Shown: one piece after another, positions 8,170 to 43,900 of the stretch
Layout: each line of letters opens with the position of its first letter
Numbering within the stretch: position 1 is the stretch's first letter
Assembly: GCA_004431415.1 (NCBI GenBank)
Contig: QPMI01000340.1
Span: 1-50,523, forward strand
DNA: 50,523 nucleotides
Direction: 5' to 3'
From: Cyanophora paradoxa CCMP329
Lineage: Eukaryota > Plantae > Glaucophyta
The notes under the pieces: model-generated
The model's database searches: none
The model's input: only the letters and a program-made list of their open reading frames with translations
What the model was told of the DNA's origin: nothing
Translations under genes and position numbers: made by a program

Positions 8170-8179
8170 TTTAAAGTAG

Positions 8180-8482: not shown

Positions 8483-8562
8483 ACCAGCCTGTTTCTGCCC
8501 GCCAGGCTGGGGCGGCGTCTAAACCAGCCACTTTCGGAGCAGCTGTTCTTGGACTTTGTAAT

Positions 8563-11279: not shown

Positions 11280-11337
11280 ACTCGCTCTGTAGTAAGAAAA
11301 GGCGACGTCCTCGCTCGCCAATAAGTAAAGAAAGAAA

Positions 11338-17248: not shown

Positions 17249-17419
17249 TTTAGGATGGTACAGGCTTTCAACCTGGTCACCTGGTCGGTGGGATGAAAGC
17301 AAAGGGCGCCCAGCTGGAGACCTGCATGTAGCTCAGCCATTCCGAATGGGACGCCCAGGGAGTGTTTCAGGATTTGAAGGTTTGAGCTCCACGCTGGCCC
17401 CGACATCCTGTCCTAGTAC

Positions 17420-18292: not shown

Positions 18293-18750
18293 TTGTTTTT
18301 GTGTGCACCTGACTTCCTGCTGTTGGCCCAACGGGAATTCAAACTGACCAGGGCTGAGAAGGAGTGAACCCCACCACTGAGTGAAGGAGTGAAATTAAGC
18401 AACACAGTCCCAGAGCTCTTGGTCTTCTCCACTCAGCCATTCGGAATGGGACTCCCACTGAGTTTTAAGGGATTTGAATGTTTCCTGGGTTCACTCCTTA
18501 GCGATGGTCAGTTTGAATTCCCGTCGGGCCCACAACAGGAAGTCAGGTGCACACAAAAACTTTCCAGGGGGAACATGCACAAGGTGCTAGCCTTTGGCAG
18601 GTGCACCCCGCCCAGCAGAGACCCTGTAAGAGGCTCTGCCCTTCCAAGCGGGATTCTCGCCGACTGTTTCAGGACTTGAATGTTTCCTGGGTTCACTCCT
18701 CAGCCTGGTCAGATTGAATTCGCGTCCGGCCCACAACAGGAAGTCAGGTG
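18293..18750. repeat. SatA fragments in both orientations
   Basis: Inverted at ~18293-18370 and forward at ~18432-18750; diverged. Confidence 0.88.
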
Positions 18751-19222
18751 CCTCTCGAGCAGTCCAATGAAAATGAGAACTCTTGGCGCAAAGATCATAG
18801 AGTGGCGCCGCAAGAACTGCATATAAAGGTACAAAGATTCTATAATATCCAGTCATGCCGAGAAAAGTCCTAACTTCTGATACAGATTTGGGGGTCGCAA
18901 ATTTGCGAGCTGCCTCCATCTTTGTGGCAGAGGTCTTGATGCCCTGTCTAGTAACCACAAATCCAAGATACTCCAATTCAGCCTTGAAGAATTTCGACTT
19001 CTTGGTCTTAAAGAAGATGTTTGCCCATCTCATAGCACCAAAGACCCACTGAAGGTCTGCCAAGTGCTGTTTCAGATATTTCGAAAATACACATATATCA
19101 TCCAAATATACCAATAAATAAGTTCCAAGAACGCTGTTTATCATCATCTGAAAAGTGGCCGGGGCTGTCTTCAAGCCCAAGTCCAAGGGGAGACCGAAAA
19201 GCAGTCTTCTCCTTGTCCTCCT
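18751..19222 (-). pseudogene. RT fragment close to the intact element (family 1a)
   Basis: TAPATFQMM..VYLDDICVFSK..RTFLGMTGYYRIFVPLYAVLAAPLYDLCAKSSHFHWTARE is nearly identical to the 31592 ORF, with small deletions. Confidence 0.9.
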
Positions 19223-19400
19223 CGTACAGGGCCTCTGCTGGGCAGGGTGCACCTGCGTAAGGCTAGCGCCTTGTGCACGTTCTCCCTGGAAAGTTTTTGT
19301 GTCCACCTGACCTTGCTGTTGTGGGCCCAAGGGGAATTCAAACTGACCAGGGCTAAGAGGGAGTGAACCCAGGAAACATTCCAGTCCCCAAACACTCGGC
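19223..19400 (-). repeat. Inverted SatA monomer
   Basis: Reverse complement of the consensus. Confidence 0.9.
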
Positions 19401-23900: not shown

Positions 23901-24275
23901 CTGACCCTGCAAAACTGGAAGCAATTGAAAAAGTTCCGATTCCAGATAATGCTACTGAGCTGCGGTCATTTCTTGGTTCCTGTAACTATTACAGAGATAA
24001 TGTCGACAAGTTTTCTATTATAACTGCTCGTCTCTACGATTTAACACAGAAAGATGTTCCTTTTGTTTGGACAGAGGAGCATACCAGGGACTTCATGAAT
24101 CTGAAGAAAGAATTGCTGAAGTCCATTATTCTCCACTATCCTGATTTCAACAAACCGTTTATTATTGAAACAGATGCCTGCGAGAAGGGTGCTTCTGGCA
24201 TTCTCTTTCAGGAACAAGTAGGTGTTTTGAAGCCCGTTTGCTTTTACAGTCGCAAATGGAGAGGTTCTGAGAAAG
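20933..24275 (+). mobile_element. Truncated Ty3/gypsy element, family 2: single gag-pol frame, ends within RNase H; 5' boundary uncertain
   Basis: PBS-like TGGTAGCATCGG at 21246. Zinc knuckle CTHCRKTGHTEPYC, protease LDTGA, RT VVDYRHLN and FIDD, RNase H TDAC, then inverted SatB. Confidence 0.92.
21382..24275 (+). pseudogene. gag-pol of family 2 with a one-base frameshift in a C9 run at 23657-23665
   Basis: ORFs 21208-23700 and 23654-24355 join as GLTNAPPTFQ if one C is removed. This may be a homopolymer sequencing error. The first in-frame ATG is at 21382. Confidence 0.88.
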
Positions 24276-24915
24276 ACCCCAGGTTTCCAATCTGCCAGAA
24301 AATAGAAGAAAGATGCACCCCAAATCTCTCTGCGGAAATATACCCAAGGGGCTAGCCTTAGGCAGAGGATCCACCCAAAAGAAAGTAGCTCAGTCAAAGG
24401 TCCCAGGTTTCCGATCTGCCAGAAAATAGAAGAAAGATGCACCCCAAACATTCAAGTCCCCAAACACTCGGTGGGGGTCCCACTTAGAAGGGCAAGCCTC
24501 TAGAGCCTCCACTATGCTAGCCCCTTGTGCATGTTCCCCCTGGAAGTTTTTGTGTGCATCTAACTTTCTGTTGTGGGCCTGCCAGAAATTCAATTCAATC
24601 TGACCAGGGCTAAGAAGGAGTGAAACCAGGAAACATTCAAGTCCCAAAACACTGGGTGCGGGTCCCACTCGGAATGCTGAAGCCTCTTACAGGGCCGCTG
24701 GAAAGTTTCCGTGCCCCCCTCTAACAGGCTCTGCCCTTCCAAGTGGGACCCTCACCGAGTGTTTGGGGACTTGAATGTTTCCTGGGTTCACTCCTTAGCC
24801 CTGGTCAGTTTGAATTCCCGTCGGGCCCACAAGAGCAAGGTCAGGTGCACACAAAACCTTTCCAGGGGGAACATGCTCAAGGCGCTAGCCTAAGCCACGT
24901 TCACCGTGCCCAGCA
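24276..24915. repeat. Mosaic of inverted SatB, inverted SatA and forward SatA
   Basis: SatB(-) ~24276-24448, SatA(-) ~24446-24695, SatA(+) ~24725-24915. Confidence 0.9.
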
Positions 24916-24977: not shown

Positions 24978-25916
24978 CTACTTCACCCGAATCATATAAT
25001 GATCCTGGAATGTCGTTGTCTCAGCATTCCAAATCCGCTGGTCTTTGACAAGCTTAAACGAATCATTCTTCTCCAGAAATTTGAACACAGATTCCCATGG
25101 ACTCGTAGCTTCGACTTTAATAGGATGGTTGTGTGCTGTGTCCTCTACAATCAGATAGCTGCCCACCGACACAAATGCTGAATACATATTCAGTTCTTCA
25201 GTAACGTATTGCTCGTCGTGTCGTGAATCCAAAATAACCAGACATTTTTTGCCTTCAACCTTAGCCTTCACGGTCGCGAAAATGTTCGGGTCAGTAGAAC
25301 TTCCGATCATGAGATCCACGCGCTCCCAAGCAGGTAGGTTTTTGGTGGTCGCCTCCACGCGATCTACAACATCAATTGCGATTACTTTTCCGTCTGGGTT
25401 AATTTGACCTAGAACGGTTGAATACATCACAGCACTTGCACCACGGAATACACCTGTTTCGACGATAACATCTGGCGCCACTTCGGAAATCACAAGCTGC
25501 TGGGTCCAGAAGTCGAAGGGATTCTTCAAGCTGACAACGTTACAAAAAGAGCTGTAATGCATACCCCGGAGGCTGTAGAGCAGCTGGAGATCGCCCATGA
25601 AAGCATTCATATCCATGGCTGCAAAACGCTTGATATCATTTTGATCATAAGGAATAAGCTCACTTCGCATCGGGAACGGATTCGAGGCAGTTGGCTGCAC
25701 CGATCCCAGACGCTCAACACTTTTCAAACTTTCGGAATTTTCACGAGAAGGAAGAGGTTTGCGAGAAACGTGTGGTACACCGGCATTCTTTTCGAGAGTT
25801 CCAAGAGATGACGAGACGACTGTGCCCTCACCGGCAGAGTAGGAACCGATGAAGTAGCCGACAACAAAAACCAAGATACAAAAACCGGCAGTTTTGATGT
25901 TCGAAGAAACAAGCAT
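24978..25916 (-). CDS. CmcI (cephalosporin hydroxylase) family / rhamnosyl O-methyltransferase-like SAM-dependent enzyme with N-terminal TM (312 aa)
   Basis: KNPFDFW..Q.VI.EVAPDVIVETGVFRGASA, KVIAID, GSSTDP, LVILDSRH..V..EL..Y...VSVGSYLIVEDT. Hydrophobic anchor followed by a low-complexity stem. Confidence 0.9.
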   Translation of the reverse strand: MLVSSNIKTAGFCILVFVVGYFIGSYSAGEGTVVSSSLGTLEKNAGVPHVSRKPLPSRENSESLKSVERLGSVQPTASNPFPMRSELIPYDQNDIKRFAAMDMNAFMGDLQLLYSLRGMHYSSFCNVVSLKNPFDFWTQQLVISEVAPDVIVETGVFRGASAVMYSTVLGQINPDGKVIAIDVVDRVEATTKNLPAWERVDLMIGSSTDPNIFATVKAKVEGKKCLVILDSRHDEQYVTEELNMYSAFVSVGSYLIVEDTAHNHPIKVEATSPWESVFKFLEKNDSFKLVKDQRIWNAETTTFQDHYMIRVK

Positions 25917-26276
25917 TTTTTTACCTAAAGTCGGTTTCGCAGATTAGTCTGCCCCCGTCCGTCTACAATGCCTGGCTTCAGTCCGGTTGGCGGCACCGAA
26001 CCCGCGCGTGGGGTCCCACTCGGAATGGCGGAGCCTCCTCATACAGGGCCCCAGCTGGGCAGAGTGCACCTAGCCGAAGGCTAGCCAGATAAAATTAAAA
26101 TCCCACAAAACTCAGTGGGGGGGTGGCTGGATTTCAGTCCCATCTGAGTTCGAGGGGGCGTAGCCCTGAACCCAAAATTGATCCTTGAGAGTCCCAGCAC
26201 TCCGTGCATGCTCCTGCCTGATCGGGAGCTCTGGGCTTTTTGGTTGCTGTGGGATGATTGGGCGGGGGGCTCTGCG

Positions 26277-27152
26277 ATGTTTTCCTACAGAAAACTTATT
26301 CAACTCTTTTTCTTAGTTCTTCTGACCGTATCAGTGGCACGTAATTTTCACCTCAATTGGAGATACTCTGCCTGTGCGGACCATGTATCTAAAACAGCCC
26401 GCACGTGTATTCTCATGGCAAGCGCTCCATTTTCCCAGTTCCGCGACGGTTCAGTCGAATCAGCAAAGAAGGCTCTTTTATTGCGTCCCCACTCTATTTT
26501 CAATAAAGCTATCTTTGCGTCTTTGCACGGATACTCTTTCCGCTTTGAAATTGTCCCACCACCGTTGGACTGGAGCAGACATTGGAGTAAAATCACCGCC
26601 ATTAAACGAGCACTTGAGGAATTTACATGGGTGCTGTGGTTCGACGTGGATACGATAATCGTCGATCTAAGTATGAACTTGGAGAATATTCTGCGTTCTA
26701 TTCCTTTGCGAGAACCTGAATTGATTGGTTGTTGCTGCTCTGTTTCAGATGAGGGTATCGATTTTCTCAAGAGTTTCAAGCCAGGAGAACATTTAAACTC
26801 AGGGGTGCTTCTAATACGTTCGACAAGTTGGACAAATGCGCTGTTTAGTCTGGTTCTCGAAAATGGCCCGATTGCTGGACACGTGTGGAATGATCAAATA
26901 GGTATCATTCATGCGTTGGAAATTCTTCAACGACGTAACAAAACTGAAGTAATGGAGAAGGTTTACTGCTTGCACGATATGGCGTACCTTAATGCTTACG
27001 GGGATGGTCAATCAGTCACTTCGCTGTTCGTGTCTCATTTTCCAGGTGACTTCTGCCCCTCGGGGGGTTGTGCTGAGCTTTTCAAGCAAATGTCGCTTGA
27101 GATCCTGTCGAATGCATCCACAATATTTGATGAAGTACTGCAACAACCTTGA
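26277..27152 (+). CDS. GT34 (GMA12/MNN10-like) glycosyltransferase, type II membrane (likely start MFSYRK)
   Basis: NK..FASLHGY, WSKITAIKRAL, WVLWFDVDTII (DxD), LNSGVLLIR, WNDQ, SHFPG; TM LIQLFFLVLLTVSVA. Confidence 0.88.
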   Translation: MFSYRKLIQLFFLVLLTVSVARNFHLNWRYSACADHVSKTARTCILMASAPFSQFRDGSVESAKKALLLRPHSIFNKAIFASLHGYSFRFEIVPPPLDWSRHWSKITAIKRALEEFTWVLWFDVDTIIVDLSMNLENILRSIPLREPELIGCCCSVSDEGIDFLKSFKPGEHLNSGVLLIRSTSWTNALFSLVLENGPIAGHVWNDQIGIIHALEILQRRNKTEVMEKVYCLHDMAYLNAYGDGQSVTSLFVSHFPGDFCPSGGCAELFKQMSLEILSNASTIFDEVLQQP

Positions 27153-27522: not shown

Positions 27523-27526
27523 CCCA

Positions 27527-28527
27527 GTGCCCAGCGCAAGTCGAGCAGCCCTCACAGACATCAGCAACACTCCCCAGCAACGACAGGAAGTCCCGGCTGC
27601 AGCCCCAAGAGCCCGGACACGGGGCAGTATCAATGGGAAACGACCATGGTCGACGTCCCGCGTAAACGACAGAGAGAGCTCTGATCTCAACAGCAGCAGG
27701 GCGACGCCGCGGCGATCGTGCATAGATGCACGAGCCCGTACAAGCTTAAGTGCACGTGAGGCTGCTATTAGCGCTAGCGCTGACCAGGAGCCGCCCCCCA
27801 GCCCAAGCAGGAGCTCTAGCCGGCACCTTAATCCCAGGCTTCGGGCTCCCGCACGCTCCAATCATAATGATGATGAGCTCGAAGCCGAGCCCGGGACAGG
27901 AACCGCCAGGGCAGTCTCGGAGCCGCAGGAACCCGAAATCGAAGCCGCACACGCGCTGCTCAGCCTCGCAAGCATGAACTCGGCCTCTAACATTAACCCA
28001 AGCACCGGCCAAGTCGGTGCGGTAGTGCTAGCTATAGCTGACGACCTGGGCGGCGGCCCGGTCGACGTCGAAGCCCCCGCGGCGCCGGCCACGGTGAACG
28101 AGGACCAGCAGAATCCGCATCGGCACAAACGCCAGGTAGCATCCAAGCGCAAATGAGTACTGCAAGAGGCACTAGCATCTAGGGGCGCAAGTGCACACCC
28201 CTGCTGTCGGACGTGCCGCCAACGCATTCAGACGGACCCGAATATGCACCCCCACGCTCCACCCCAGGAAGCCCATGTATGCTGGAGTGACCCACCTCCG
28301 GATACGGTGCTATGGGAAGCTCATGCGGCTTCCGAACAGGTGCTGCACACAGGGGAACTGCCCATACTGATGCCTCATAGGTGACTGACAGATGCGTGCG
28401 ATATAGTCGGAGGTGCTCCCCCCTGTGAGCTTCAGGCCACAGGGGCCCGGGCTAACCAGGGTCTGGGCGAGGGGGGCGACTTTAAACCAGGCCCTGGGCT
28501 CGCCCGGGGTACCCGAGCACACACACC
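27527..28527 (+). other. ~1-kb unique GC-rich insert with a 5'-truncated low-complexity ORF; origin unknown (gene or TE remnant)
   Basis: 209-codon open frame lacking an ATG start, bounded by SatB on both sides. Confidence 0.35.
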
Positions 28528-29222
28528 TCGAAGGCCCCAGGTTTCCGATTTGCCACATAATAGAAGAAAGATGCACCCCAAATCTCTCAAGGCATATTCC
28601 CCCAGAGAGATTTGGGGTGCATCTTTCTTCTATTTTCTGGCAGATCTGAAACCTGGGGCCCTTGACTGAGTGACTTGCAGGTGGTGGCTGCCCAGCAGAG
28701 GCCCTGTACGAGGCTCTGCCCTTCCAAGTGGGATCCCCCCCAGTGTTTGGGGACTTGAATGTTTCCTGGGTTCACTCCCTCTTAGCGCTGGTCAGTTTGA
28801 ATTCCAGTTGGGCCCACAAAAGCAAGGTCAGGTGCACACAAAAACATTCCAGGGGGAACATGCACAAGGCGCTAGCCTAAGCCAGGTTCACCCTGCCCAG
28901 CAGATGCCCTGCAAGAGGCAGAAGGGGCAAGCCTAAGGGAACGGCAGTCATTATGCATCCTCTTCTACTTCAACCGAATCATATAATGATCCTGGAATGT
29001 CGTTGTCTCAGCATTCCAAATCCGCTGGTCTTTGACAAGCTTTAACGAATCATTCTTCTCCAGAAATTTGAACGTTCCCTGGGTTCACTCCTTCTTAGCT
29101 CTGGTCAGTTTGAATTCCCGTCAGGCCCACAAAAGCGAGGTCAGGTGCACACAAAAACATTCCAGGGGGAACATGCACAAGGCGCTAGCCTTAAGCAGGT
29201 GCACCCTGCCCACAGAGGCCCT
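28528..29222. repeat. SatB/SatA mosaic containing a duplicate of the CmcI gene 3' end
   Basis: ~28712-29073 is nearly identical to ~24725-25087. Confidence 0.9.
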
Positions 29223-29224
29223 CT

Positions 29225-29266
29225 ATTCGCTACGGCAAAAGGGAAGGGGAACTACGCTTCGCGACA
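29225..29266 (-). mobile_element. Inverted 42-bp LTR 5'-terminal remnant (family 1a)
   Basis: The reverse complement TGTCGCGAAGCGTAGTTCCCCTTCCCTTTTGCCGTAGCGAAT matches the start of the LTRs at 29395 and 35990. Confidence 0.9.
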
Positions 29267-29394
29267 GGGCCTTCGACTGAGTGACTTGCTTTTAGGTGGG
29301 TCATCTGCCTAAGGCTAGCGCCTTGTGCATATTCCCCCGGAGAGATTTGGGGTGCATCTTTCTTCGATTTTGTGGCAGATCGGAAACCTGGGGC

Positions 29395-29595
29395 TGTTGC
29401 GAAGCGTAGTTCCCCTTCCTTTTCGCCGTAGCGAATGTAGCATGTACGCTAGGGATACTCCGTCCCTTGTGTAGGGGTATGTTATTCAATCATACGCGGA
29501 TATTACGCGTGTGTGCGCGTGCGTCCCGGCACGGCACTGCGCCGTGTGCGGAAGTGGCTAGAACCCATCGTATAGCTATTAGCAGCTTCTTATCA
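29395..29595 (+). repeat. 5' LTR
   Basis: TGTTGCG...CTTATCA; 4 differences from the 3' LTR by manual comparison. Confidence 0.97.
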
Positions 29596-30111
29596 TCGGG
29601 GCTGCCGCCGGAAGCCATTGTATTTCGTGGCAGCGGTGGAATGTTCGACGCAAAGTGTTCGACACAGCGGTCTCACAGCGTCTGCGCATCGTTCTTCTGA
29701 TTGCGTATACGCTTACAGTGCGTTCTGCAGCGATTTGCGCACTGCGACCTTTCATTGTCGATTCCGCCATTCTGCGGAGAACATAAGCTTGTTGCATCGC
29801 GATTCACTCATGGATCTCATTTTCGAAGCTCTGTGCACTCTTGGCCGGCTGGCCGAGGTCGTTTGCTTGTGATACCTCCGTTTTCCGTGGAATTCCGCGA
29901 GTTTCCGGAGTTGTCTCTTTTCTCTCCTTTTGGAATCTCTCTTTATCTCTCTTTCTTTCTTTTGGAACGATCTGAAATGCTTTCTTGAACACTGGCCTCG
30001 TCAAGCGACACTATTCGTGCTGTGTACCGTCGTAGGCTTGGGCCCTTCGCTAGGTCCTTAGTTAACGACTGTATTAATAAAGCTATCCTGCTCTCCGCAC
30101 AGGCAGGAAGG

Positions 30112-31281
30112 ATGGCCGACGAGGACAACGTTTCTGTGGACATTGACCAGGAGGACATCATGGCTGCCCAGCCTAGGGTGGACATGATTAAGCCGCTCCT
30201 GCGCAACCTTAATCTGCCCAAATTCGAGTATTCTGCTCCTTCTAGATTCCTCAAAAACGTTCGTGACGTGTTGAAGGCGATCTATGTCCTTCCCACTGCG
30301 GACACCACTCCCTACTCCACATGGACGGCTCAGGCAAAGGTTGATTTTGACTATGCTTGGCCGCATGTGCAGTTGAAACTCCAGTCTGTCTTCAACGAGG
30401 CAGCTGGGGCCCATGACTTTTCTCGAGTGGTCCTTGAATGTGACAATTGGACGACTTTTCTTAAGAAGTTCGAGGATCACTTTATGCATTCGGATGTCCA
30501 GACGGATTCTGCTCGCAATTTCTGGTCCTACACATACCAGAGTGCTTGTCTCCAGGCTGGTACTCAAGTCAATTTTGAGGACTTTGCTGTGGAGAAGATG
30601 AAGCGGGCGGAAGAAGCTGGCATTCTCGAGAAAGTTGTGGTGAAACAAATTTGGAGTGATGATCTTAAGTTGGGTGAGCTGCCTGCTGAATTGGACGACA
30701 ATAAACTTCGCTTTTTGCGTCGGCTGCGCAGTCTTTGGACCGATCGCACTTCCTCTTTTTCTTCGGTTTCTCCTTTTGGAATTGCTTCTCTTCCTTTTGG
30801 ATCGCCGAAAAACGTTTCTGGATTGAACGCTCTCACTTCGGAGCGTATTGAGTCTTTGATTGATGAGCGGGTTGAATCGAAGCTCAAACAGTTTTCTTTG
30901 AAGGTGGATGATAAGCTTGATGCACTTCGTGACGAAACTCGCCGCCAATTGAGCGAGATTCGGCACGAAGCTCGCCAGCAGTTCGATGAGTTGCTCGACG
31001 ACTCTCGTCGCACTTCTTCTATTATTTTGGATTGCATGGACCAGTTGTCTCGCCAGTTGCAGTATCGCCCTCGCGGTGATAGCTGGCGTGACCAGCCTCG
31101 TGGAAATTACAATTTTGATCGCAATCGTTCGAATGACAAATTTGGTAATTCTGGAAATGATTCTCGCAATTTTGGAAATTCTTCTTGTGGTTATCGCGGT
31201 CGCTCTGCTGAGCGCCGTGGGTCGTCGGCTGACCCTAAGGGTCGGGGCGGTTCGCAGCCCCGCCCGGCGGGAAAAGCCTAA
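30112..31281 (+). CDS. gag: Gag (no zinc knuckle; coiled-coil-like segment and R/G/N-rich tail)
   Basis: Long ORF between the 5' LTR and pol; first ATG at 30112; tail conserved in the 8180 copy. Confidence 0.88.
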   Translation: MADEDNVSVDIDQEDIMAAQPRVDMIKPLLRNLNLPKFEYSAPSRFLKNVRDVLKAIYVLPTADTTPYSTWTAQAKVDFDYAWPHVQLKLQSVFNEAAGAHDFSRVVLECDNWTTFLKKFEDHFMHSDVQTDSARNFWSYTYQSACLQAGTQVNFEDFAVEKMKRAEEAGILEKVVVKQIWSDDLKLGELPAELDDNKLRFLRRLRSLWTDRTSSFSSVSPFGIASLPFGSPKNVSGLNALTSERIESLIDERVESKLKQFSLKVDDKLDALRDETRRQLSEIRHEARQQFDELLDDSRRTSSIILDCMDQLSRQLQYRPRGDSWRDQPRGNYNFDRNRSNDKFGNSGNDSRNFGNSSCGYRGRSAERRGSSADPKGRGGSQPRPAGKA

Positions 31282-31320
31282 CCCAGCCTGTTGTTGCCCG
31301 CCAGGCTGGGGCGGCCAAGA
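31269..31320 (+). promoter_or_regulatory. -1 programmed ribosomal frameshift signal
   Basis: G_GGA_AAA heptamer in the gag frame, 6-nt spacer, then a 9-bp stem CCCAGCCTG/CAGGCTGGG. The -1 frame is open and homologous to the other copy. Confidence 0.8.
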
Positions 31321-31591
31321 AACCAGCCATTTTCGGCGCAGCGAATGGACTTCGATCGTTGTTGCCTTTGATTACTCTCAATGAGTTCTTGAAGCGGCAG
31401 TCGTTGTCGGTCGCTCGCGCTTTCCCTTTCCCTTCCTTGGATGCTTCTCAATCTTCTTCTCCTATTTCTTCTTCTGGTCCCGATGTTACCCTTCAAGAGA
31501 ATGATCCCATTCTCCATGAGGTTGCTTCAGTGGAAATTCGCCCAGACATTCTGGTTTTGGTCAAGCGCATTCGCGTGAAATTAAAAATGTT

Positions 31592-34500
31592 TTGGATGAT
31601 TCGAAAAGTGCTAGTAGAGTAGTGGTAGTTAGTGGAAATCGTGGAAAATTGGAACAGAAATCCCTTTCGAATTTCTTTTCTGATGAGCTGCGATGGAAAC
31701 GAGATGCCCCTGCTAAAAAGCATTTTATATCATCTGCAAACAATTCGAAGCCGGTTTCCCTGAAGTTGTCTTTTGATGATAATGGCCGAGCCTCAATTGA
31801 AATTTGTTCTCTGGACTCCCAGAGCCCTCCTGCTGAGCCTGCATTCGCAGGGCCGCGTCGCTTCATGACCTCAGCTCCGGGGAGGTCAACTCTGGACGTT
31901 GTCATTCAGGGCAAACATCACAAATTCCTTCTCGACAGCGGGGCAGATGTCTCTTTCATTCTTTCTTCTACAATCTCTTCTCTTGGACTTCAAAATAAGG
32001 TGTTTAGAACTATTCACACTCCTTCTGTCAAGCTCCCGAATTCTGCATTGGTGGCTGTTCCTGGTGAGGTTCATGTGGCTGCTACTATTGGGCCCCTCAC
32101 CCGGAGTTTTCCTTTTCTTGTGGTTGATTTCCCGGGATACGCATTCGATGGCATCTTAGGCCAAGATTTCTTTTCTGATAATGGAGTCACCTATTGCAAT
32201 AAGGACGCTGACAACCGATTTGTGGTCTTCGCCAAGCACCCAGACAAGCCAGTTAAGTGTGGAATTCTCTCTTTCTTACCTGGCACCTCTACGCAGCCGA
32301 GTTCTCTGTCGCCGGAGACACCGGAATCTGACCCCTTGGACGACTCCAGCGCTCGCAGAGTGTCCAAGGAGCATGGTCATATTCTGGAGGTTGCAAGGGA
32401 GGTTAAAATTGAACCTGGTGTGCAACGGAAGGTTGAACTGCAAGTCGGAGGCAACCACTATTTGCCGGATTGTGAAGGTTTTCTTGTCAACTTCTACAAA
32501 TGGGACGACAATCAGGAGGTCCGTGTGGCAAACGGGCTTGCTGCGTGTCGTGGAGGCAAAGTATATGCTTTAGTTTCGAATTTGAGCAATCGTTTTTCTG
32601 AGAAACCAGTTGTTTTGAAGAAGGGCCGTGCAATCGCACGATTTGTCCCTGAGAAAAATCTCGAAGCTGAAGTATTTGACTTGGCTCTAAATTTGAGTTA
32701 TGATCAAGATGGGAACGGCAAGTATGTGAAGGTCGACCGGCCTGGCGAGGTTCCGTCGCCTTCGAGCTCAACATACTCTGCTCAGTACACTTGCGCAGAC
32801 TCATTGCAAGTCAACTCTGCCGATGCCAAACATGTTGACAATTCTTTCGTGGAAATCGCGCCTCCAAAACGTTCACCGGAGTCCGAGAATGCTTCGAAAA
32901 ATGTTTTTGATAGAGTAGGTCTTCCCGAGTGTTCATATCCATATGAGGAGAAGTTAGGTAGTTTTTCGCATTTGAACGCTGTTCCGATCGATCAAGCTTC
33001 GACTGTTATTTTTGATGAATTGCGGCAACGATATGGCGCCGACATTATTGATGCTCTCCGGGCCGTCGACATTGGCAGTCGGGATGATACGCCTGCGGAG
33101 CGTGCTGTTATGGCTGACTTCCTTGCACAGAACTGGGACTTGGCCAAGGCTGCGCTACCTCCGTACGACCCAAGTGCGCCTCATCCCCCGATCAAGCAAT
33201 CGATCAAGACTGGGGACGCCCGCCCCATCGCGGAGCCCCCTCGGAGGCACTCGCAGACTGAACGAGAATTAATTATCGATGAGACCAAAAAGTTGCTTTC
33301 TCGCAATCTTATTCGTCCCTCTCGCTCACCTTGGGCCGCTCCTGTGGTCCTTGTGCGCAAGAAGGATGGATCTCTTCGATTTTGCATTGATTATCGCAAA
33401 TTGAATTCAGTTACTGCGGACGACGCTTATCCTTTGCCTAGAATTGATGATGCTCTTGAAGCTTTGACTGGAGCAATTTATATTACTGGTATGGATGCCC
33501 CTGATGGCTATTGGGGAATTGAAATGGAGGAGGAGGACAAGGAGAAGACTGCTTTCCGGTCTCCCCTTGGACTTTTTGAATGGAATGTTATGCCCCAAGG
33601 CCTAGAGACGGCCCCTGCCACTTTTCAAATGATGATGAACAGCGTTCTTGGCACTTATTTATATGTATTCATTTTGGTATATTTGGACGACATATGTGTA
33701 TTTTCGAAATCCTTGAAGCAGCACCTTGCTGATCTTCAGTGGGTGTTTGATGCAATGAGACGGGCAAACATCTTCTTTAAGCCCAAGAAATCGAAGTTTT
33801 TCAAGGCTGAATTGGAGTATCTTGGATTTGTAGTTACTAGACAGGGCATCAAGCCCTCTGCCACAAAGGTGGAGGCTGTTCGCAAGTTTGCGACACCCAA
33901 ATCTGTATCAGAAGTTAGGACTTTTCTTGGAATGACTGGATATTATAGAATCTTTGTACCTCTATATGCAGTTCTTGCGGCGCCACTTTATGATCTTTGC
34001 GCCAAGAGTTCACATTTTCATTGGACTGCTCGAGAGGATCTGGCTTTTCGAAAATTAAAAGAGTTGCTTTGTTCTGCTCCCATCCTTTCGCTTCCTGATT
34101 TCTCTAAATCTTTCATTCTCAAGACTGATGCTTCTAAGACCGGAGTTGGTGCGGTCCTTTCTCAATTGGATGAATTTGGGAATGAAAAAGTTGTTTCTTT
34201 CACTTCTCACAAATTCTCATCTCCTGAGAAGAAATGGAATCGGGAAGTTGTTATTGAATATGCAGCTGAGTCCCTTTCTGATGAGCAGCAGAAGTGGACG
34301 GTCGCGGAGCAAGAGTTGTATGCAATTTGGTGGGCTGTCACCAAGAAGTTCCCTCAGTATCTCCGTGGCAAGAAGTTCATTATCAAGTCGGATCACTCGG
34401 CTCTTCAATATTTGAAATCGGCTAAGAAGTTGCCCAGTGCTCGCATCACTCGCTGGATTATGGATATGCAGGAGTTTGATTTCGAGATCCAGCACAAGCC

Positions 34501-35917
34501 TGGCAAATCTAATGCCGATGCGGATGCTCTTTCTCGCCTTGTGCGAGTAGCAGTTCTTTCCTTGGAAGCGATGGAGTTTTCTTCTAATTTTTCGAGCGCT
34601 TTCTTGGATGCGATTGAGTTGCAGTTGAGTTTGCCCCCGGCTCGAATTCGGGATGAGCAGATAAATGATGTTATTTTGGCGGATATGATCAAGTATTTTG
34701 AATCGGATATTACAATTGAACCACAAGGTGTCAACAAGGAGGCCGAACGCCAACTCAAGAGTGGCAAGTTTTCTGTGCAAGATGGCGTTCTCGTCCACAC
34801 TCGGCCTTCGGACGAACTTGTGCGTATTTGCGTACCCGATCAACTTAAATCGATTATTGTGTCTTCGGTACACCGCACGCTCGGACATCCCGGAGTCGGC
34901 CAGATGTACAATCATCTCAAGCGGCGGTACTATTGGCGGAGCATGTTCTCTGATGTCGCTACATTTGTTTCGACATGCGCCGATTGCCAACGTGTCAAGA
35001 ATTCCAAGACTGTTCAAGCGGTTCCTCAATTTGAGATTCATGCTGACCGGCCGATGCAACACTTGGAAATTGACATCGTCGGGCCTTTTCCGAAGTCGAA
35101 ACAAGGCAACAAGTATCTGATTACTATTATCGATGTTTTTACGCGTTGGTGCCATGCGGTGCCCGCGCGAACGAAGTCGGCTATGTTTGTCGTTCGGGCG
35201 TTGTTCGACCACTGGATTCCCCTGCATGGAGTCCCCGCCAAGATTTCGTCGGATCAGGGCGGCGAATTCAAGAATTTGCTTCTTAATGAACTGGAGCGTC
35301 TTTTCGGAATAAAGGCGGTCTTTTCTTCTTCTTATCATCCGCAGTCTCAAGGTGCTGTGGAAAAATTGAATGACACTTTGGTTACTCGTCTACGGTTTTA
35401 TATTGACAAAAACGCTTCAACATGGGATCTCTCTCTTCCATTTGCGCTCTTCGCAGTGCGCAATTTCGTTAATCCTACCACGGGCTACACTCCTTTCGAA
35501 ATGTTGTACGGAAGGCCTTGTACTCTTCCTGTGGACTTGCTGGCTACTCCTGAAGTTCAAGTGACAACTTCGGAGCCTACTGGTTACCCAGCCGTGTTGG
35601 CTCGGCGGTTCTCTCGCATTTATACCGATATTCAGCAAGCTAAGGAGGAATATCTTGCCAAGCAGCAGCAGCGGCCTTCTCAACCAGTTTTCATTCCTGG
35701 AGAAGTTGTTGCTGTGAAGACCCCTTCCACTCGGCGGTCTGATAAGCTTTCCCATCGTTTCACTGGACCTTGGACGGTGCTTAAAGATGTTTCTCATGGC
35801 AAGGGAGTTACTTTCTTGCTGGAGTATTCTGGGCCTAAGGAGCGTGGTTCTCCTGCTGAGGGCTCGCGTCAGATGGTTCATGCCTCTCGGCTCAAGCCTT
35901 GGAGGGACCCTGATTGA
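31592..35917 (+). CDS. pol: Pol polyprotein (protease, RT, RNase H, integrase with GPY/F-like tail, no chromodomain). The true N-terminus lies upstream, across a 1-bp lesion at ~31548.
   Basis: LLDSGA, YLDD, TDAS, HHCC, D-D-E motifs and KLSHRFTGPW; 1441 uninterrupted codons. Confidence 0.97.
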   Translation: MDDSKSASRVVVVSGNRGKLEQKSLSNFFSDELRWKRDAPAKKHFISSANNSKPVSLKLSFDDNGRASIEICSLDSQSPPAEPAFAGPRRFMTSAPGRSTLDVVIQGKHHKFLLDSGADVSFILSSTISSLGLQNKVFRTIHTPSVKLPNSALVAVPGEVHVAATIGPLTRSFPFLVVDFPGYAFDGILGQDFFSDNGVTYCNKDADNRFVVFAKHPDKPVKCGILSFLPGTSTQPSSLSPETPESDPLDDSSARRVSKEHGHILEVAREVKIEPGVQRKVELQVGGNHYLPDCEGFLVNFYKWDDNQEVRVANGLAACRGGKVYALVSNLSNRFSEKPVVLKKGRAIARFVPEKNLEAEVFDLALNLSYDQDGNGKYVKVDRPGEVPSPSSSTYSAQYTCADSLQVNSADAKHVDNSFVEIAPPKRSPESENASKNVFDRVGLPECSYPYEEKLGSFSHLNAVPIDQASTVIFDELRQRYGADIIDALRAVDIGSRDDTPAERAVMADFLAQNWDLAKAALPPYDPSAPHPPIKQSIKTGDARPIAEPPRRHSQTERELIIDETKKLLSRNLIRPSRSPWAAPVVLVRKKDGSLRFCIDYRKLNSVTADDAYPLPRIDDALEALTGAIYITGMDAPDGYWGIEMEEEDKEKTAFRSPLGLFEWNVMPQGLETAPATFQMMMNSVLGTYLYVFILVYLDDICVFSKSLKQHLADLQWVFDAMRRANIFFKPKKSKFFKAELEYLGFVVTRQGIKPSATKVEAVRKFATPKSVSEVRTFLGMTGYYRIFVPLYAVLAAPLYDLCAKSSHFHWTAREDLAFRKLKELLCSAPILSLPDFSKSFILKTDASKTGVGAVLSQLDEFGNEKVVSFTSHKFSSPEKKWNREVVIEYAAESLSDEQQKWTVAEQELYAIWWAVTKKFPQYLRGKKFIIKSDHSALQYLKSAKKLPSARITRWIMDMQEFDFEIQHKPGKSNADADALSRLVRVAVLSLEAMEFSSNFSSAFLDAIELQLSLPPARIRDEQINDVILADMIKYFESDITIEPQGVNKEAERQLKSGKFSVQDGVLVHTRPSDELVRICVPDQLKSIIVSSVHRTLGHPGVGQMYNHLKRRYYWRSMFSDVATFVSTCADCQRVKNSKTVQAVPQFEIHADRPMQHLEIDIVGPFPKSKQGNKYLITIIDVFTRWCHAVPARTKSAMFVVRALFDHWIPLHGVPAKISSDQGGEFKNLLLNELERLFGIKAVFSSSYHPQSQGAVEKLNDTLVTRLRFYIDKNASTWDLSLPFALFAVRNFVNPTTGYTPFEMLYGRPCTLPVDLLATPEVQVTTSEPTGYPAVLARRFSRIYTDIQQAKEEYLAKQQQRPSQPVFIPGEVVAVKTPSTRRSDKLSHRFTGPWTVLKDVSHGKGVTFLLEYSGPKERGSPAEGSRQMVHASRLKPWRDPD

Positions 35918-35989
35918 TCTCTTTCTTTTCTTTTCCTTCCTTGGGCTTGGCCAGCGCGGACGTGGCCTTTTTCTTACTTGGAGGAGAGT

Positions 35990-36190
35990 TGTTGCGAAGC
36001 GTAGTTCCCCTTCCCTTTCGCCGTAGCGAATGTAGCATGTACGCTAGGGATACTCCGTCCCTTGTGTAGGGGTATGTTATTCAATCATACACGGATATTA
36101 CGCGTGTGTGCACGTGCGTCCCGGCACGGCACTGCACCGTGTGCGGAAGTGGCTAGAACCCATCGTATAGCTATTAGCAGCTTCTTATCA
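35990..36190 (+). repeat. 3' LTR
   Basis: Direct repeat of 29395-29595, preceded by the PPT. Confidence 0.97.
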
Positions 36191-36455
36191 GGGCCTTTGA
36201 CTGAGTGACTTGCGGGTGGGTGGGTCATCTGCCTAAAGCTAGCGCCTTCTGCATATTCCCCCAGAGAGATTTGGGGTGCATCTTTCTTCGATTTTGTGGC
36301 TGATTGGAAACCTGGGGCCTTCGACTGAGTGACTTGCAGGTGGGTGGGTCATCTTTCTAAGGCTAGCGCCTTGTGCATATTCCCCGGAATGAACCCAGAA
36401 ATCAGTCAAATCCCTAAAGAGTCTGTGGGTGTCCCACTCGGAATTTCTGAGCCTC
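36191..36455. repeat. ~1.6 SatB monomers followed by a strongly diverged inverted SatA piece
   Basis: SatB to ~36385, then TGAACCCAG..GTCCCACTCGGAA..GAGCCTC. Confidence 0.85.
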
Positions 36456-36465
36456 TTCCAACAAA

Positions 36466-37299
36466 TTAAAACGGGTCCTGGCAGAAGGACTTGATTATAG
36501 ATTGCTCTGCAGGGGATAAGTAGGCCCAGTACTTGTGGACAGCAAATGGTTTTTCGTAAAAAACTGTTTCAACAGCAAATCGCATAGCAGTTTCAGGGCT
36601 TGGGAGCCTGCAACCGAACTCTTCTGCATGGGTTTGACATATTATTCCCCACAGACAGTCTTCAGCCCCATCAATGTGTGAACCATACCTCTCATAAGCA
36701 ACATCTTCGACTTTTTTGAACCCATCCCCCAAGCTGTCGAGAATGCGCAACATCATGGACTTGTTCCGATAAGACAGCCCACCATTCCCTACACGAATAC
36801 GTCCACTTTTCCATGGTGCTCCAACAATATCATAGGAATTCCAGTTCTCGATAGAATCGACGCTTGATTCGCAGAGAAAAGAGTCAGACTGGAATATAAG
36901 AACCTTCTCGGTTTCAATGACACTCCAAAACCACACAGTTTTCAGTAAATGATTGTAAAGCGACAAAGATAACGGTTGAAACTTTTGTGGTAACGGAACG
37001 AGCTTTATTTTACCAAAACGCACATTAAGCCCGAAACTGTTTCGAAGAAAGCTTTCTTTGTCAATATCGTACATAATTACAATGCACCAATTATCAGGCA
37101 ACTTTCGAAGTATATTCGCAATGATTGAAAAAAGCTGTTTGGACACCGGCCCAAGTGTTGTTACGGCTGTTCCGCCGGAGCAATCATGCCCTTGTACGCT
37201 TCTATCAACCGAGGACTGTGGATTATTGGTGAGGGTGTGATGAAGTAAAGTGAAGAGACAAAGAGTCAAACACAACACCAGCAGTCTCAATTTTATCAT
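36466..37299 (-). CDS. Second DUF5672-family putative glycosyltransferase with signal anchor (277 aa)
   Basis: VLIFQSDSFLCESS, YDIVGAPW, VGNGGLSYRN, AEDCLW, RFAVET, HKYWAY and a terminal FCQDPF, shared with 14750-15622. Confidence 0.87.
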   Translation of the reverse strand: MIKLRLLVLCLTLCLFTLLHHTLTNNPQSSVDRSVQGHDCSGGTAVTTLGPVSKQLFSIIANILRKLPDNWCIVIMYDIDKESFLRNSFGLNVRFGKIKLVPLPQKFQPLSLSLYNHLLKTVWFWSVIETEKVLIFQSDSFLCESSVDSIENWNSYDIVGAPWKSGRIRVGNGGLSYRNKSMMLRILDSLGDGFKKVEDVAYERYGSHIDGAEDCLWGIICQTHAEEFGCRLPSPETAMRFAVETVFYEKPFAVHKYWAYLSPAEQSIIKSFCQDPF

Positions 37300-37875: not shown

Positions 37876-37974
37876 GGTCATCTTCCTTGCTGGTGCTGGT
37901 GTCACTCACTCAGAGGCCCCAGGTTTCTGATCTCTGACAAAAAAGAAGAAAAATGCACCCCAAATCACTCAGTC

Positions 37975-40900
37975 CTGGGGCCTTCGACTGAGTGACTTGC
38001 TGGTGGGTGGGTTATCTGCCTAAGGCTAGCGCCTTGTGCATATTCCCCCAAAGAGATTTAGGCTGCATCTTTCTTCTATTTTCTGGCAGATCGGAAACCT
38101 GGGGCCTTTGACTGAGTGACTTGCTGGTGGGTGGGTCATCTGCCTAAGGCTAGCGCCTTGTGCATATTCCCCCAGAGAGATTTGAAGTGCATCCTTTTTC
38201 TATTTTCTGGCACATCGGAAACCTGGGGCCTTCGACTGAGTGACTTGCTGGTGGGTGGGTCATCTGCCTAAGGCTAGCGCCTTGTGCATATTCCCCCAGA
38301 GAGATTTGAAGTGCATCCTTTTTCTATTTTCTGGCACATCGGAAACCTGGGGCCTTCGACTGAGTGACTTGCTGGTGGGTGGGTCATCTGCCTAAGGCTA
38401 GCGCCTTGTGCATATTCCCCCAGAGAGATTTGAAGTGCATCCTTCTTCTATTTTGTGGCAGATCGGAAACCTGGGGCCTTTGACTGAGTGACTTGCTGGT
38501 GGATGGGTCATCTGCCTAAGGCTAGCGCCTTGTGCATATTCCCCCAGAGAGATTTGAAGTGCATCCTTTTTCTATTTTCTGGCACATCGGAAACCTGGGG
38601 CCTTCGACTGAGTGACTTGCTGGTGGGTGGGTCATCTGCCTAAGGCTAGCACCTTGTGCATATTCCCCCAGAGAGATTTGAAGTGCATCCTTTTTCTATT
38701 TTCTGGCAGATCGGAAACCTGGGGCCTTTGACTGAGTGACTTGCTGGTGGGTGGGTCATCTGCCTAAGGCTAGCGCCTTGTGCATATTCCCCCAGAGAGA
38801 TTTGAAGTGCATCTTTCTTCTATTTTCTGGCAGACCGGAAACCTGGGGCCTTCGACTGAGTGTCTTGCTTTTGGGAGGGTCATCTTCCTAAGGCTAGCGC
38901 CTTGTGCATATTCCCCCAGAGAGATTTGGTGCATCTTTTTCTATTTTCTGGCAGATCGGAAACCTGGGGCCTTCGACTGAGTGACTTGCTGGTGGGTGGG
39001 TCATCTGCCTAAGGCTAGCGCCTTGTGCATATTCCCCCAGAGAGATTTGAAGTGCATCTTCTTCTATTTTGTGGCAGATCGGAAACCTGGGGCCTTTGAC
39101 TGAGTGACTTGCTGGTGGGTGGGTCATCTGCCTAAGGCTAGCGCCTTGTGCATATTCCCCCAGAGAGATTTGAAGTGCATCCTTTTTCTATTTTCTGGCA
39201 GATCGGAAACCTGGGGCCTTCGACTGAGTGACTTGCTGGTGGGTGGGTCATCTGCCTAAGGCTAGCGCCTTGTGCATATTCCCCCAGAGAGATTTGAGGT
39301 GCATCCTTCTTCTATTTTGTGGCAGATCGGAAACCTGGGGCCTTCGACTGAGTGACTTGCTGGTGGGTGGGTCATCTGCCTAAGGCTAGCGCCTTGTGCA
39401 TATTCCCCCAGAGAGATTTGAAGTGCATCCTTTTTCTATTTTTGGCAGATCGGAAACCTGGGGCCTTGACTGAGTGACTTGCTTGGGGGGTCATCTGCCT
39501 AAGGCTAGCGCCTTGTGCATATTCCCCAGAGAGATTTGGGTGCATCTTCTTTATTTTTGGCAGATCGAAACCTGGGGCCTTCGACTGAGTGACTTGCTTG
39601 TGGGTGGGTCATCTGCCTAAGGCTAGCGCCTTGTGCATATTCCCCCAGAGAGATTTGGGTGCATCTTTCTTCTATTTTGTGGCAGATCGGAAACCTGGGG
39701 CCTTCGACTGAGTGACTTGCTGGTGGGTGGGTCATCTGCCTAAGGCTAGCACCTTGTGCATATTCCCCCAGAGAGATTTGGGTGCATCCTTCTTCTATTT
39801 TTGGCAGATCGAAACCTGGGGCCTTCGACTGAGTGACTTGCTGGTGGGTGGGTCATCTGCCTAAGGCTAGCGCCTTGTGCATATTCCCCCAGAGAGATTT
39901 GAAGTGCATCTTTCTTCTATTTTGTGGCAGATCGGAAACCTGGGGCCTTCGACTGAGTGACTTGCTGGTGGGTGGGTCATCTGCCTAAGGCTAGCGCCTT
40001 GTGCATATTCCCCCAGAGAGATTTGGAGTGCATCTTTTTCTATTTTGTGGCAGATCGGAAACCTGGGGCCTTCGACTGAGTGACTTGCTGGTGGGTGGGT
40101 CATCTGCCTAAGGCTAGCGCCTTGTGCATATTCCCCCAGAGAGATTTGGGTGCATCTTCTTCTATTTTGTGGCAGATCGGAAACCTGGGGCCTTTGACTG
40201 AGTGACTTGCTGGTGGGTGGGTCATCTGCCTAAGGCTAGCGCCTTGTGCATATTCCCCCAGAGAGATTTGGGTGCATCCTTTTTCTATTTTGTGGCAGAT
40301 CGGAAACCTGGGGCCTTCGACTGAGTGACTTGCTGGTGGGTGGGTCATCTGCCTAAGGCTAGCGCCTTGTGCATATTCCCCCAGAGAGATTTGGGTGCAT
40401 CCTTCTTCTATTTTGTGGCAGATCGGAAACCTGGGGCCTTTGACTGAGTGACTTGCTGGTGGGTGGGTCATCTGCCTAAGGCTAGCGCCTTGTGCATATT
40501 CCCCCAGAGAGATTTGAAGTGCATCTTTCTTCTATTTTGTGGCAGATCGGAAACCTGGGGCCTTCGACTGAGTGACTTGCTGGTGGGTGGGTCATCTGCC
40601 TAAGGCTAGCGCCTTGTGCATATTCCCCCAGAGAGATTTGGGTGCATCCTTCTTCTATTTTTGGCAGATCGGAAACCTGGGGCCTTCGACTGAGTGACTT
40701 GCTGGTGGGTGGGTCATCTGCCTAAGGCTAGCGCCTTGTGCATATTCCCCCAGAGAGATTTGGGTGCATCTTTCTTCTATTTTGTGGCAGATCGGAAACC
40801 TGGGGCCTTCGACTGAGTGACTTGCTGGTGGGTGGGTCATCTGCCTAAGGCTAGCGCCTTGTGCATATTCCCCCAGAGAGATTTGAAGTGCATCTTTCTT

Positions 40901-43900
40901 CTATTTTGTGGCAGATCGGAAACCTGGGGCCTTTGACTGAGTGACTTGCTGGTGGGTGGGTCATCTGCCTAAGGCTAGCGCCTTGTGCATATTCCCCCAG
41001 AGAGATTTGAGTGCATCTTCTTCTATTTTGTGGCAGATCGGAAACCTGGGGCCTTGACTGAGTGACTTGCTGGTGGGTGGGTCATCTGCCTAAGGCTAGC
41101 GCCTTGTGCATATTCCCCCAGAGAGATTTGGGGTGCATCCTTCTTCTATTTTGTGGCAGATCGGAAACCTGGGGCCTTCGACTGAGTGACTTGCTGGTGG
41201 GTGGGTCATCTGCCTAAGGCTAGCGCCTTGTGCATATTCCCCAGAGAGATTTGGGTGCATCTTTCTTCTATTTTTGGCAGATCGGAAACCTGGGGCCTTC
41301 GACTGAGTGACTTGCTGGTGGGTGGGTCATCTGCCTAAGGCTAGCGCCTTGTGCATATTCCCCCAGAGAGATTTGAAGTGCATCCTTTTTCTATTTTGTG
41401 GCAGATCGGAAACCTGGGCCTTGACTGAGTGACTTGCTGGTGGGTGGGTCATCTGCCTAAGGCTAGCGCCTTGTGCATATTCCCCCAGAGAGATTTGAAG
41501 TGCATCTTTCTTCTATTTTGTGGCAGATCGGAAACCTGGGGCCTTCGACTGAGTGACTTGCTGGTGGGTGGGTCATCTGCCTAAGGCTAGCGCCTTGTGC
41601 ATATTCCCCCAGAGAGATTTGGGTGCATCTTTTTCTATTTTGTGGCAGATCGGAAACCTGGGGCCTTGACTGAGTGACTTGCTGGTGGGTGGGTCATCTG
41701 CCTAAGGCTAGCGCCTTGTGCATATTCCCCCAGAGAGATTTGGGTGCATCCTTCTTCTATTTTGTGGCAGATCGGAAACCTGGGCCTTTGACTGAGTGAC
41801 TTGCTGGTGGGTGGGTCATCTGCCTAAGGCTAGCGCCTTGTGCATATTCCCCCAGAGAGATTTGAAGTGCATCCTTTTTCTATTTTGTGGCAGATCGGAA
41901 ACCTGGGGCCTTCGACTGAGTGACTTGCTGGTGGGTGGGTCATCTGCCTAAGGCTAGCGCCTTGTGCATATTCCCCAGAGAGATTTGGGTGCATCTTTCT
42001 TCTATTTTGTGGCAGATCGGAAACCTGGGGCCTTCGACTGAGTGACTTGCTGGTGGGTGGGTCATCTGCCTAAGGCTAGCGCCTTGTGCATATTCCCCCA
42101 GAGAGATTTGGGGTGCATCTTTCTTCTATTTTGTGGCAGATCGGAAACCTGGGCCTTGACTGAGTGACTTGCTGGTGGGTGGGTCATCTGCCTAAGGCTA
42201 GCGCCTTGTGCATATTCCCCAGAGAGATTTGGGTGCATCTTTCTTCTATTTTGTGGCAGATCGGAAACCTGGGGCCTTGACTGAGTGACTTGCTGGTGGG
42301 TGGGTCATCTGCCTAAGGCTAGCGCCTTGTGCATATTCCCCAGAGAGATTTGAGTGCATCTTTCTTCTATTTTTGGCAGATCGGAAACCTGGGCCTTGAC
42401 TGAGTGACTTGCTGGTGGTGGGTCATCTGCCTAAGGCTAGCGCCTTGTGCATATTCCCCCAGAGAGATTTGGGTGCATCTTTTTCTATTTTGTGGCAGAT
42501 CGGAAACCTGGGGCCTTGACTGAGTGACTTGCTGGTGGTGGGTCATCTGCCTAAGGCTAGCGCCTTGTGCATATTCCCCCAGAGAGATTTGAAGTGCATC
42601 TTTCTTCTATTTTGTGGCAGATCGGAAACCTGGGGCCTTCGACTGAGTGACTTGCTGGTGGGTGGGTCATCTGCCTAAGGCTAGCGCCTTGTGCATATTC
42701 CCCCAAAGAGATTTGGGGTGCATCCTTCTTCTATTTTTGGCAGATCGGAAACCTGGGGCCTTCGACTGAGTGACTTGCTGGTGCGTGGGTCATCTGCCTA
42801 AGGCTAGCGCCTTGTGCATATTCCCCCAGAGAGATTTGAAGTGCATCCTTTTTCTATTTTCTGGCACATCGGAAACCTGGGGCCTTGACTGAGTGACTTG
42901 CTGGTGGGTGGGTCATCTGCCTAAGGCTAGCGCCTTGTGCATATTCCCCAGAGAGATTTGGGTGCATCTTTCTTCTATTTTTGGCAGATCGGAAACCTGG
43001 GGCCTTGACTGAGTGACTTGCTGGTGGGTGGGTCATCTGCCTAAGGCTAGCGCCTTGTGCATATTCCCCAGAGAGATTTGGGTGCATCTTTTTCTATTTT
43101 TGGCAGATCGGAAACCTGGGGCCTTGACTGAGTGACTTGCTGGTGGGTGGGTCATCTGCCTAAGGCTAGCGCCTTGTGCATATTCCCCAGAGAGATTTGG
43201 GTGCATCTTTCTTCTATTTTGTGGCAGATCGGAAACCTGGGGCCTTCGACTGAGTGACTTGCTGGTGGGTGGGTCATCTGCCTAAGGCTAGCGCCTTGTG
43301 CATATTCCCCAGAGAGATTTGGGTGCATCTTTCTTCTATTTTGTGGCAGATCGGAAACCTGGGGCCTTGACTGAGTGACTTGCTGGTGGGTGGGTCATCT
43401 GCCTAAGGCTAGCGCCTTGTGCATATTCCCCCAGAGAGATTTGGGTGCATCTTTCTTCTATTTTGTGGCAGATCGGAAACCTGGGCCTTGACTGAGTGAC
43501 TTGCTGGTGGGTGGGTCATCTGCCTAAGGCTAGCGCCTTGTGCATATTCCCCCAGAGAGATTTGGGTGCATCTTTCTTCTATTTTTGGCAGATCGGAAAC
43601 CTGGGGCCTTGACTGAGTGACTTGCTGGTGGTGGGTCATCTGCCTAAGGCTAGCGCCTTGTGCATATTCCCCAGAGAGATTTGGGTGCATCTTTCTTCTA
43701 TTTTGTGGCAGATCGGAAACCTGGGGCCTTCGACTGAGTGACTTGCTGGTGGGTGGGTCATCTGCCTAAGGCTAGCGCCTTGTGCATATTCCCCCAGAGA
43801 GATTTGAGGTGCATCTTTCTTCTATTTTGTGGCAGATCGGAAACCTGGGGCCTTCGACTGAGTGACTTGCTGGTGGGTGGGTCATCTGCCTAAGGCTAGC

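Follow-up and report, generated by a model that had tools for sequence, protein, structure and literature searches.

A chromodomain-less Ty3/gypsy retrotransposon family of the glaucophyte Cyanophora paradoxa with long terminal repeat edges at GGGC in two related satellites

Contig QPMI01000340.1 of Cyanophora paradoxa CCMP329 (assembly GCA_004431415.1) is 50,523 nucleotides (nt) long, and the whole of it, termed the window here, was analyzed. It carries two related satellites, SatA and SatB, and a long terminal repeat (LTR) retrotransposon family of the Ty3/gypsy type, represented chiefly by an apparently intact element, E2. Three LTR edges of this family in the window adjoin the tetranucleotide GGGC within satellite sequence. 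The original prediction, made from the sequence of the window, was that the family inserts repeatedly at the same satellite position by sequence- or phase-specific integration, perhaps guided by a satellite-bound protein or by nucleosome phasing.

Satellite organization of the window

A large SatA array and a large SatB array bound the window (Table 1). The ~30 kb between them are occupied by transposon debris, short patches of satellite facing either way, and a small number of intronless open reading frames (ORFs). Consensus sequences were constructed for SatA and SatB only and none for the retrotransposon. In the consensus alignment, reverse-complemented SatA aligns with the entire SatB unit, SatA being ~82 bases longer; the two satellites are thus homologous, and their arrays here are oppositely oriented. 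Both contain a strongly conserved ~25-nt box, CCTAAGGCTAGCGCCTTGTGCAT.

The two units differ in the supply of GGGC. The 12,550-nt SatB array holds 103 copies in a single phase, one per monomer (0.8% of positions), and no occurrence of GCCC. In SatA the density is higher, with ~5.7 GGGC/GCCC sites in each monomer (2.8% of positions). Tetramers made up entirely of G and C number 7 per monomer in SatB and 17 in SatA.

LTR junctions at GGGC

E2 lies in SatB between two copies of GGGC, as had been foreseen; its left flank ends in ...AACCTGGGGC and its right flank begins with GGGCCTTTGAC. If E2 and one of the two GGGC copies are deleted, what remains is an exact SatB consensus. No match is obtained when the flanks are taken as 3 or 5 bp, which sets the target site duplication (TSD) at 4 bp.

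The second edge belongs to E1, the remnant of an older, inverted copy. E1 includes the terminal TG and reads ...CGCGACA, followed by GGGCCTTCGAC at 29267, which is 124 bp before the GGGC at 29391. It is 93-95% identical to the E2 LTR and has private changes at LTR positions 4 and 30, both of the CpG/TpG type. On its inner side the remnant stops at LTR position 42 and adjoins SatA-like sequence near 29221. The original prediction of a second, inverted terminus with its own substitutions, one monomer upstream at the same GGGC, is thereby upheld, as is its argument that E1 does not copy an E2 junction: the E1 LTR is inverted but its satellite flank is in the + orientation, so that E1 cannot be generated by copying or inverting either E2 junction. 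Judged from the sequence, E1 and E2 arose by separate integration events that used one SatB site in opposite orientations. Derivation of E1 as a tandem duplicate of E2 plus flank was considered separately and is excluded by the opposite orientation.

The third edge is that of a diverged element, subfamily b, whose 3′ LTR ends in ...GGGACA and adjoins a GGGC of SatA (junction 11102/11103), again as predicted. The 5′ LTR of this element is missing. No further LTR termini of the E2/b family occur in the 50,523-nt window, and inspection by eye revealed no extended motif common to the three junction sites beyond GGGC.

Table 1. Coordinates of the satellite arrays, retrotransposon copies, and junction features in the window
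Feature	Position	Strand	Description
SatA array	1-8169	+	~40 monomers of 206 bp, 8.2 kb, without element insertion
Subfamily b 5′ part	8170-10738	+	gag end to reverse transcriptase (RT); opposite orientation to 3′ half
Subfamily b 3′ LTR	11103-11279	-	177 bp, TG...CA; outer end at GGGC (11099-11102) of SatA
Subfamily b 3′ half	11280-13677	-	RT to integrase; frame open, 74% amino acid identity to E2 over RT-integrase
E1	29225-29266	-	42 nt, remnant of older inverted copy; reverse complement of LTR positions 1-42
SatB monomer between E1 and E2	29267-29394	+	single monomer (124 bp + 4 bp), GGGC at both ends
Left TSD copy of E2	29391-29394	+	GGGC, in SatB
E2	29395-36190	+	apparently intact Ty3/gypsy LTR retrotransposon, 6,796 bp; LTR pair, open gag/pol, Pfam domain order
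E2 5′ LTR	29395-29595	+	201 bp, TG...CA termini
E2 gag ORF	30112-31281	+	389 amino acids, without zinc knuckle, RG-rich tail
E2 pol open frame	31592-35917	+	1,441 codons: protease (DSG), RT (YLDD), RNase H, integrase
E2 3′ LTR	35990-36190	+	201 bp; purine-rich tract (putative polypurine tract) ~35980-35989 just before
Right TSD copy of E2	36191-36194	+	GGGC, in SatB
SatB array	37974-50523	+	~102 monomers of 123-124 bp, 12.5 kb, without element insertion

Structure and coding capacity of E2

E2 has the features of a Ty3/gypsy element, namely direct TG...CA LTRs with a short TSD and the domain order protease, RT, RNase H, integrase. Pfam matches on pol fall at residues 102-193 (Asp_protease_2), 588-747 (RVT_1), 811-962 (RT_RNaseH), 1081-1137 (Integrase_H2C2), and 1152-1250 (rve). 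The stretch between protease and RT, pol residues 197-587 (32180-33352), comprises ~390 residues without a Pfam family. The gap between gag and pol (31282-31591) is ~300 nt and contains stops in the continuing frame. The purine-rich GGAGGAGAG lies immediately 5′ of the 3′ LTR, while the bases 3′ of the 5′ LTR do not begin with the usual TGG. E2 has no env, since just 72 nt lie between the stop of pol and the 3′ LTR.

The two LTRs of E2 are 98% identical, with 4 differences, three of which are CpG transitions. E2 thus appears to be a young, apparently intact element, and its LTR divergence overstates its age, given that most of the changes are of the CpG type. Both private differences of E1, like three of the four LTR differences of E2, are CpG/TpG (CpA) changes.

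The integrase combines an HHCC finger and a DDE core with a GPY/F-like C-terminus (FTGPW) and is homologous to the prototype foamy virus (PFV) and Ty3 integrases in the PDB (Ty3: 7q5b). The protein stops ~40 residues past FTGPW, in agreement with the expectation that it ends near this motif, and it has no match to the chromodomain family PF00385 even at E = 5. Since a chromodomain was tested for and is absent, the family is probably not a chromovirus or CRM family. Nor is a Pfam family that might represent a targeting domain found in the protease-RT spacer or the integrase tail, where the atlas clusters are only unnamed and retroelement-like. The proteins nearest to E2 pol are unnamed metagenome proteins of 31-45% identity, the closest of which also lack a chromodomain; no protein more than 45% identical is present among 5.8 billion proteins, and the invariant 21-nt LTR pattern has no match in the metagenome or prokaryote genome collections. 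The E2 family is apparently a lineage-specific, non-chromovirus gypsy family.

The subfamily b element is split. Both halves break at element position ~4171, and 364 bp of SatA lie between the + half and the - half, an arrangement consistent with inversion of a segment made up of the 3′ half and its adjoining SatA. The break in a third fragment (18741-19223) is at element position 4136, only ~35 nt away from that of subfamily b. Both E2 and subfamily b have GGGC edges despite only 74% identity in pol, which suggests that use of GGGC is a trait conserved across subfamilies a (E2) and b.

Evidence from public reads

About half of the sampled words of E2 are contained in 24 runs of one organism, and the element is present in roughly 19 samples sequenced independently. 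Four public runs were compared with window positions 29000-30000 as short Logan contigs, mostly <350 nt and satellite-dominated, so that this screen detects only junctions with the satellites inside that interval and provides neither a census nor evidence on satellite preference. Contig depth hints at several internal copies and more LTRs; depth is not copy number and is not relied on.

A 2019 run contains an 84-nt contig that matches 29367-29450 exactly and thereby confirms the 5′ junction of E2 independently of the source assembly. The E1 and subfamily b junctions are absent among the contig matches listed from the four runs. All four runs contain a contig joint in which an intact LTR 3′ end (29595, in a variant with a 1-nt insertion) runs into opposite-strand SatA at 29132. 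This joint represents another insertion in satellite DNA, and it occupies a third position of the monomer. In the window and contigs together, three of the four known LTR edges adjoin GGGC and one adjoins TTGT.

A proposed short-sequence integration preference

The explanation favored here, with a rough probability of 0.5, is that the E2 family (subfamilies a and b) has a short-sequence integration preference and that its satellite location reflects retention rather than homing. A Ty3/gypsy family with two subfamilies has entered two related satellites on several independent occasions, with a retroviral-type DDE integrase that makes a 4-bp staggered cut; its intasome probably favors a G-rich target, most commonly in the form GGGC. 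With one GGGC per SatB monomer, insertions of either orientation would coincide in monomer position even when independent. Unequal exchange probably shrank the array until E1 and E2 lay one monomer apart, with the register kept, and the enrichment in satellites would mainly represent retention of insertions.

The numerical argument takes E2 as the source of the hypothesis and counts the second SatB match and the SatA match jointly, which gives p ~2.4 × 10⁻⁴ under uniform insertion. As a control, the ~18 non-LTR satellite boundaries of the window occur at scattered points of the SatB monomer, from coordinate 4 to 120, and only one of them, a fold-back junction near 37877, falls at the GGGC integration cut. 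Slight clustering, possibly due to chance, is seen for four of the ~18, which lie at 4-10 nt from GGGC.

Several points weigh against such a preference: (i) the window holds only three junctions and the hypothesis was framed post hoc, (ii) the TSD of subfamily b is inferred rather than seen, (iii) the joint probability rises to ~0.05 if the integrase merely favors all-G/C tetramers, (iv) the flank of the contig joint found in all four runs reads TTGT and then GGGCC in SatA, which makes the presumed TSD TTGT, 4 bp from GGGC, (v) GGGC is non-palindromic, unlike the known sequence-specific gypsy targets (PMC5408687), and (vi) the survey is confined to the window and short contigs, the genome-wide distribution being outside its scope. 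Because of the LTR end at TTGT, any preference for GGGC is not absolute.

The closest contender holds that there is no real specificity, the family landing in tolerant GC-rich spots and the three GGGC edges being a small-sample coincidence. Points (iii) and (iv) are what such a coincidence would look like, and satellite flanks are expected in a window that is mostly satellite. Against this, both SatB insertions use the same one of seven all-G/C tetramers and subfamily b is at GGGC among the 17 of SatA, a pattern that uniform insertion would produce at the low probability given above. Coincidence is a serious but unlikely account of the three edges.

Still less probable is true satellite homing, guided in phase by a positioned (possibly centromeric) nucleosome or by a protein on a SatA/SatB box, to which the integrase would be tethered in the manner of Tal1 on CENH3 chromatin or Ty3 on TFIIIB. 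The two SatB insertions have an identical phase, as homing would require, yet GGGC is unique in the SatB monomer, and for this reason the same position and the same tetranucleotide are inseparable there. SatA provides the better comparison: the SatB GGGC aligns to a GGGC at coordinate 90 of the reverse-complemented SatA, whereas subfamily b inserted at coordinate 158. The SatA site is non-homologous to the SatB site, and the tetranucleotide, not the repeat position, is therefore what the three sites have in common. Guidance by the phase of the monomer, or by a protein at a conserved place, becomes less likely on this account, although the argument is not airtight because the conserved box, a region of ~90 bp common to the two satellites that homing could exploit, is at much the same distance from both sites (46 and 49 nt). 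The contig joint at a third position and the lack of a chromodomain or other recognizable tethering module in the integrase also speak against homing.

That all four LTR edges seen lie in SatA or SatB would suit homing as well. The window is mostly satellite, however, and the reads are blind to other flanks, so that satellite flanks are no proof of targeting and may represent an ascertainment effect. The ~142 monomers of the two large arrays are without any insertion, contrary to what homing would lead one to expect, and the E2-family copies sit in the scrambled zone between the arrays, beside another gypsy family and debris. Decay of the LTRs is biased toward CpG, as would suit a region of methylated cytosines and hence methylated heterochromatin. 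Passive accumulation in tolerant heterochromatin explains the satellite location at least as well as active targeting.

Finally, it is very improbable that the E1 junction is a by-product of rearrangement (inversion, fold-back, or duplication) or an assembly error: the region is rich in inversions and fold-back junctions, tandem duplication of an element with its flank yields identical satellite TSDs (bioRxiv 10.64898/2026.09.17.752431), and E1 is just 42 nt long with a junction absent among the contig matches listed, but an inverted LTR beside a non-inverted flank needs an inversion with both breakpoints exactly at element ends, and E1 has a complete TG terminus and its own substitutions.

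The original prediction thus survives in part. A preference for GGGC is plausible; specificity for phase does not follow, given that phase is inseparable from sequence in SatB, that the SatA site is non-homologous, and that TTGT is an exception. Guidance by a satellite-bound protein or nucleosome phase is argued against by the SatA coordinates, and satellite targeting cannot be inferred from a window and a contig screen so dominated by those satellites. The far-reaching version, a chromodomain-less glaucophyte Ty3/gypsy lineage with near site-specific GGGC integration, mainly or only in the two major satellites, and with a targeting module in the integrase or the 390-residue protease-RT region, is regarded as a long shot.

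Other elements and genes in the window

A third, unrelated gypsy family occupies 21208-24355 (protease, RT, RNase H) and is truncated in RNase H where inverted SatB starts (24273); on the left, where it meets SatB (20932), the edge does not correspond to an LTR terminus. Amid the satellite and transposon debris, sugar-modifying enzymes are encoded by intronless ORFs at 14750-15622(+), 16403-17302(-), 24978-25916(-), 26178-27152(+), and possibly 36480-37270(-). The products are DUF5672, galactosyltransferase family 7, CmcI-type rhamnosyl O-methyltransferase, and GT34 proteins. The best database matches of the CmcI-type methyltransferase are bacterial-type, at <=50% identity. A foreign gene island, viral or bacterial-type, that came to lie in heterochromatin may be the source of these ORFs.

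Between 37337 and 37974, ~540 bp of SatB are inverted with respect to the main array, and the fold-back junctions near 37877, 37913, and 37971 are short, with a few bases of microhomology. A GC-rich 1-kb piece at 27526-28527 contains a 209-residue ORF without a Pfam match and is flanked by two inverted SatB patches; it is not a simple insertion because the monomer phases of these patches are discontinuous across it.

Comparison with known systems

Centromere- and satellite-seeking elements have been studied mostly in plants, and literature searches found no study of Cyanophora satellites, centromeres, or the E2 family. If the GGGC preference or homing is true, target-specific integration would extend to a deep-branching algal lineage, one without a described case of such LTR integration, and to an integrase without an obvious targeting domain. 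With its one site in one 124-bp monomer, the family would then offer a simple system for studying the recognition of target DNA or chromatin by a retroviral-type intasome. If the preference is not real, E2 would be an ordinary young gypsy element in heterochromatin.

Recurrent insertion at one position of a repeat unit is reported for R1/R2 in ribosomal DNA, TRAS/SART in telomeric repeats, and Utopia in U2 genes (PMC4640811). Non-LTR elements of the R1/R2 type differ from E2 in that they use an endonuclease and target-primed reverse transcription and attain near-absolute specificity, whereas E2 uses a DDE integrase.

CRM, Cereba/Quinta, ATHILA, and Tal1 resemble the E2 family as LTR retrotransposons inside satellite arrays. 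Integration of Tal1, a Ty1/copia element, follows CENH3 chromatin via the integrase C-terminus (PMC11735389), and Tal1 shows that targeting can be brought about by minor alterations in the tail of an otherwise ordinary integrase (PMC11735389; bioRxiv 10.64898/2026.09.17.752431). The passages of PMC11735389 retrieved by term search give no fixed monomer position for Tal1, in contrast to the single SatB position of E1 and E2. TSDs of Athila are not widely shared between copies (bioRxiv 10.64898/2026.09.17.752431). CRM has a chromodomain-derived CR motif, whereas the E2 integrase stops shortly past GPY/F.

The Ty3 integrase is tethered to TFIIIB, and its base-pair precision at tRNA genes stems from the bound protein complex; the Dictyostelium DGLT-A and TRE elements likewise integrate position-specifically via RNA polymerase III factors. 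The integrases of Ty3 and the E2 family are homologous, and Ty3 demonstrates that Ty3/gypsy integrases can reach base-pair precision. Unlike Ty3, the E2 family has no known protein landmark, and its SatA and SatB sites are non-homologous.

Among LTR retroelements, sequence-specific integration is described as exclusive to insect errantiviruses and their two-ORF derivatives (review, PMC5408687). The Drosophila errantivirus group (gypsy, ZAM, Idefix, 297/17.6) has recurrent 4-bp TSDs (TATA, CGCG, ATAT) that are ascribed to target choice by the integrase; targets of this type are palindromic, the integrases lack GPY/F, and the founding members carry an env ORF (PMC5408687). The E2 family departs from errantiviruses in its non-palindromic GGGC, GPY/F-like motif, absence of env, and glaucophyte host, and its preference rests on three junctions and one exception, as opposed to TSDs repeated from copy to copy. 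Both are nevertheless Ty3/gypsy elements with a 4-bp TSD, and errantiviruses provide the closest analogy to the E2 family in mode of action.

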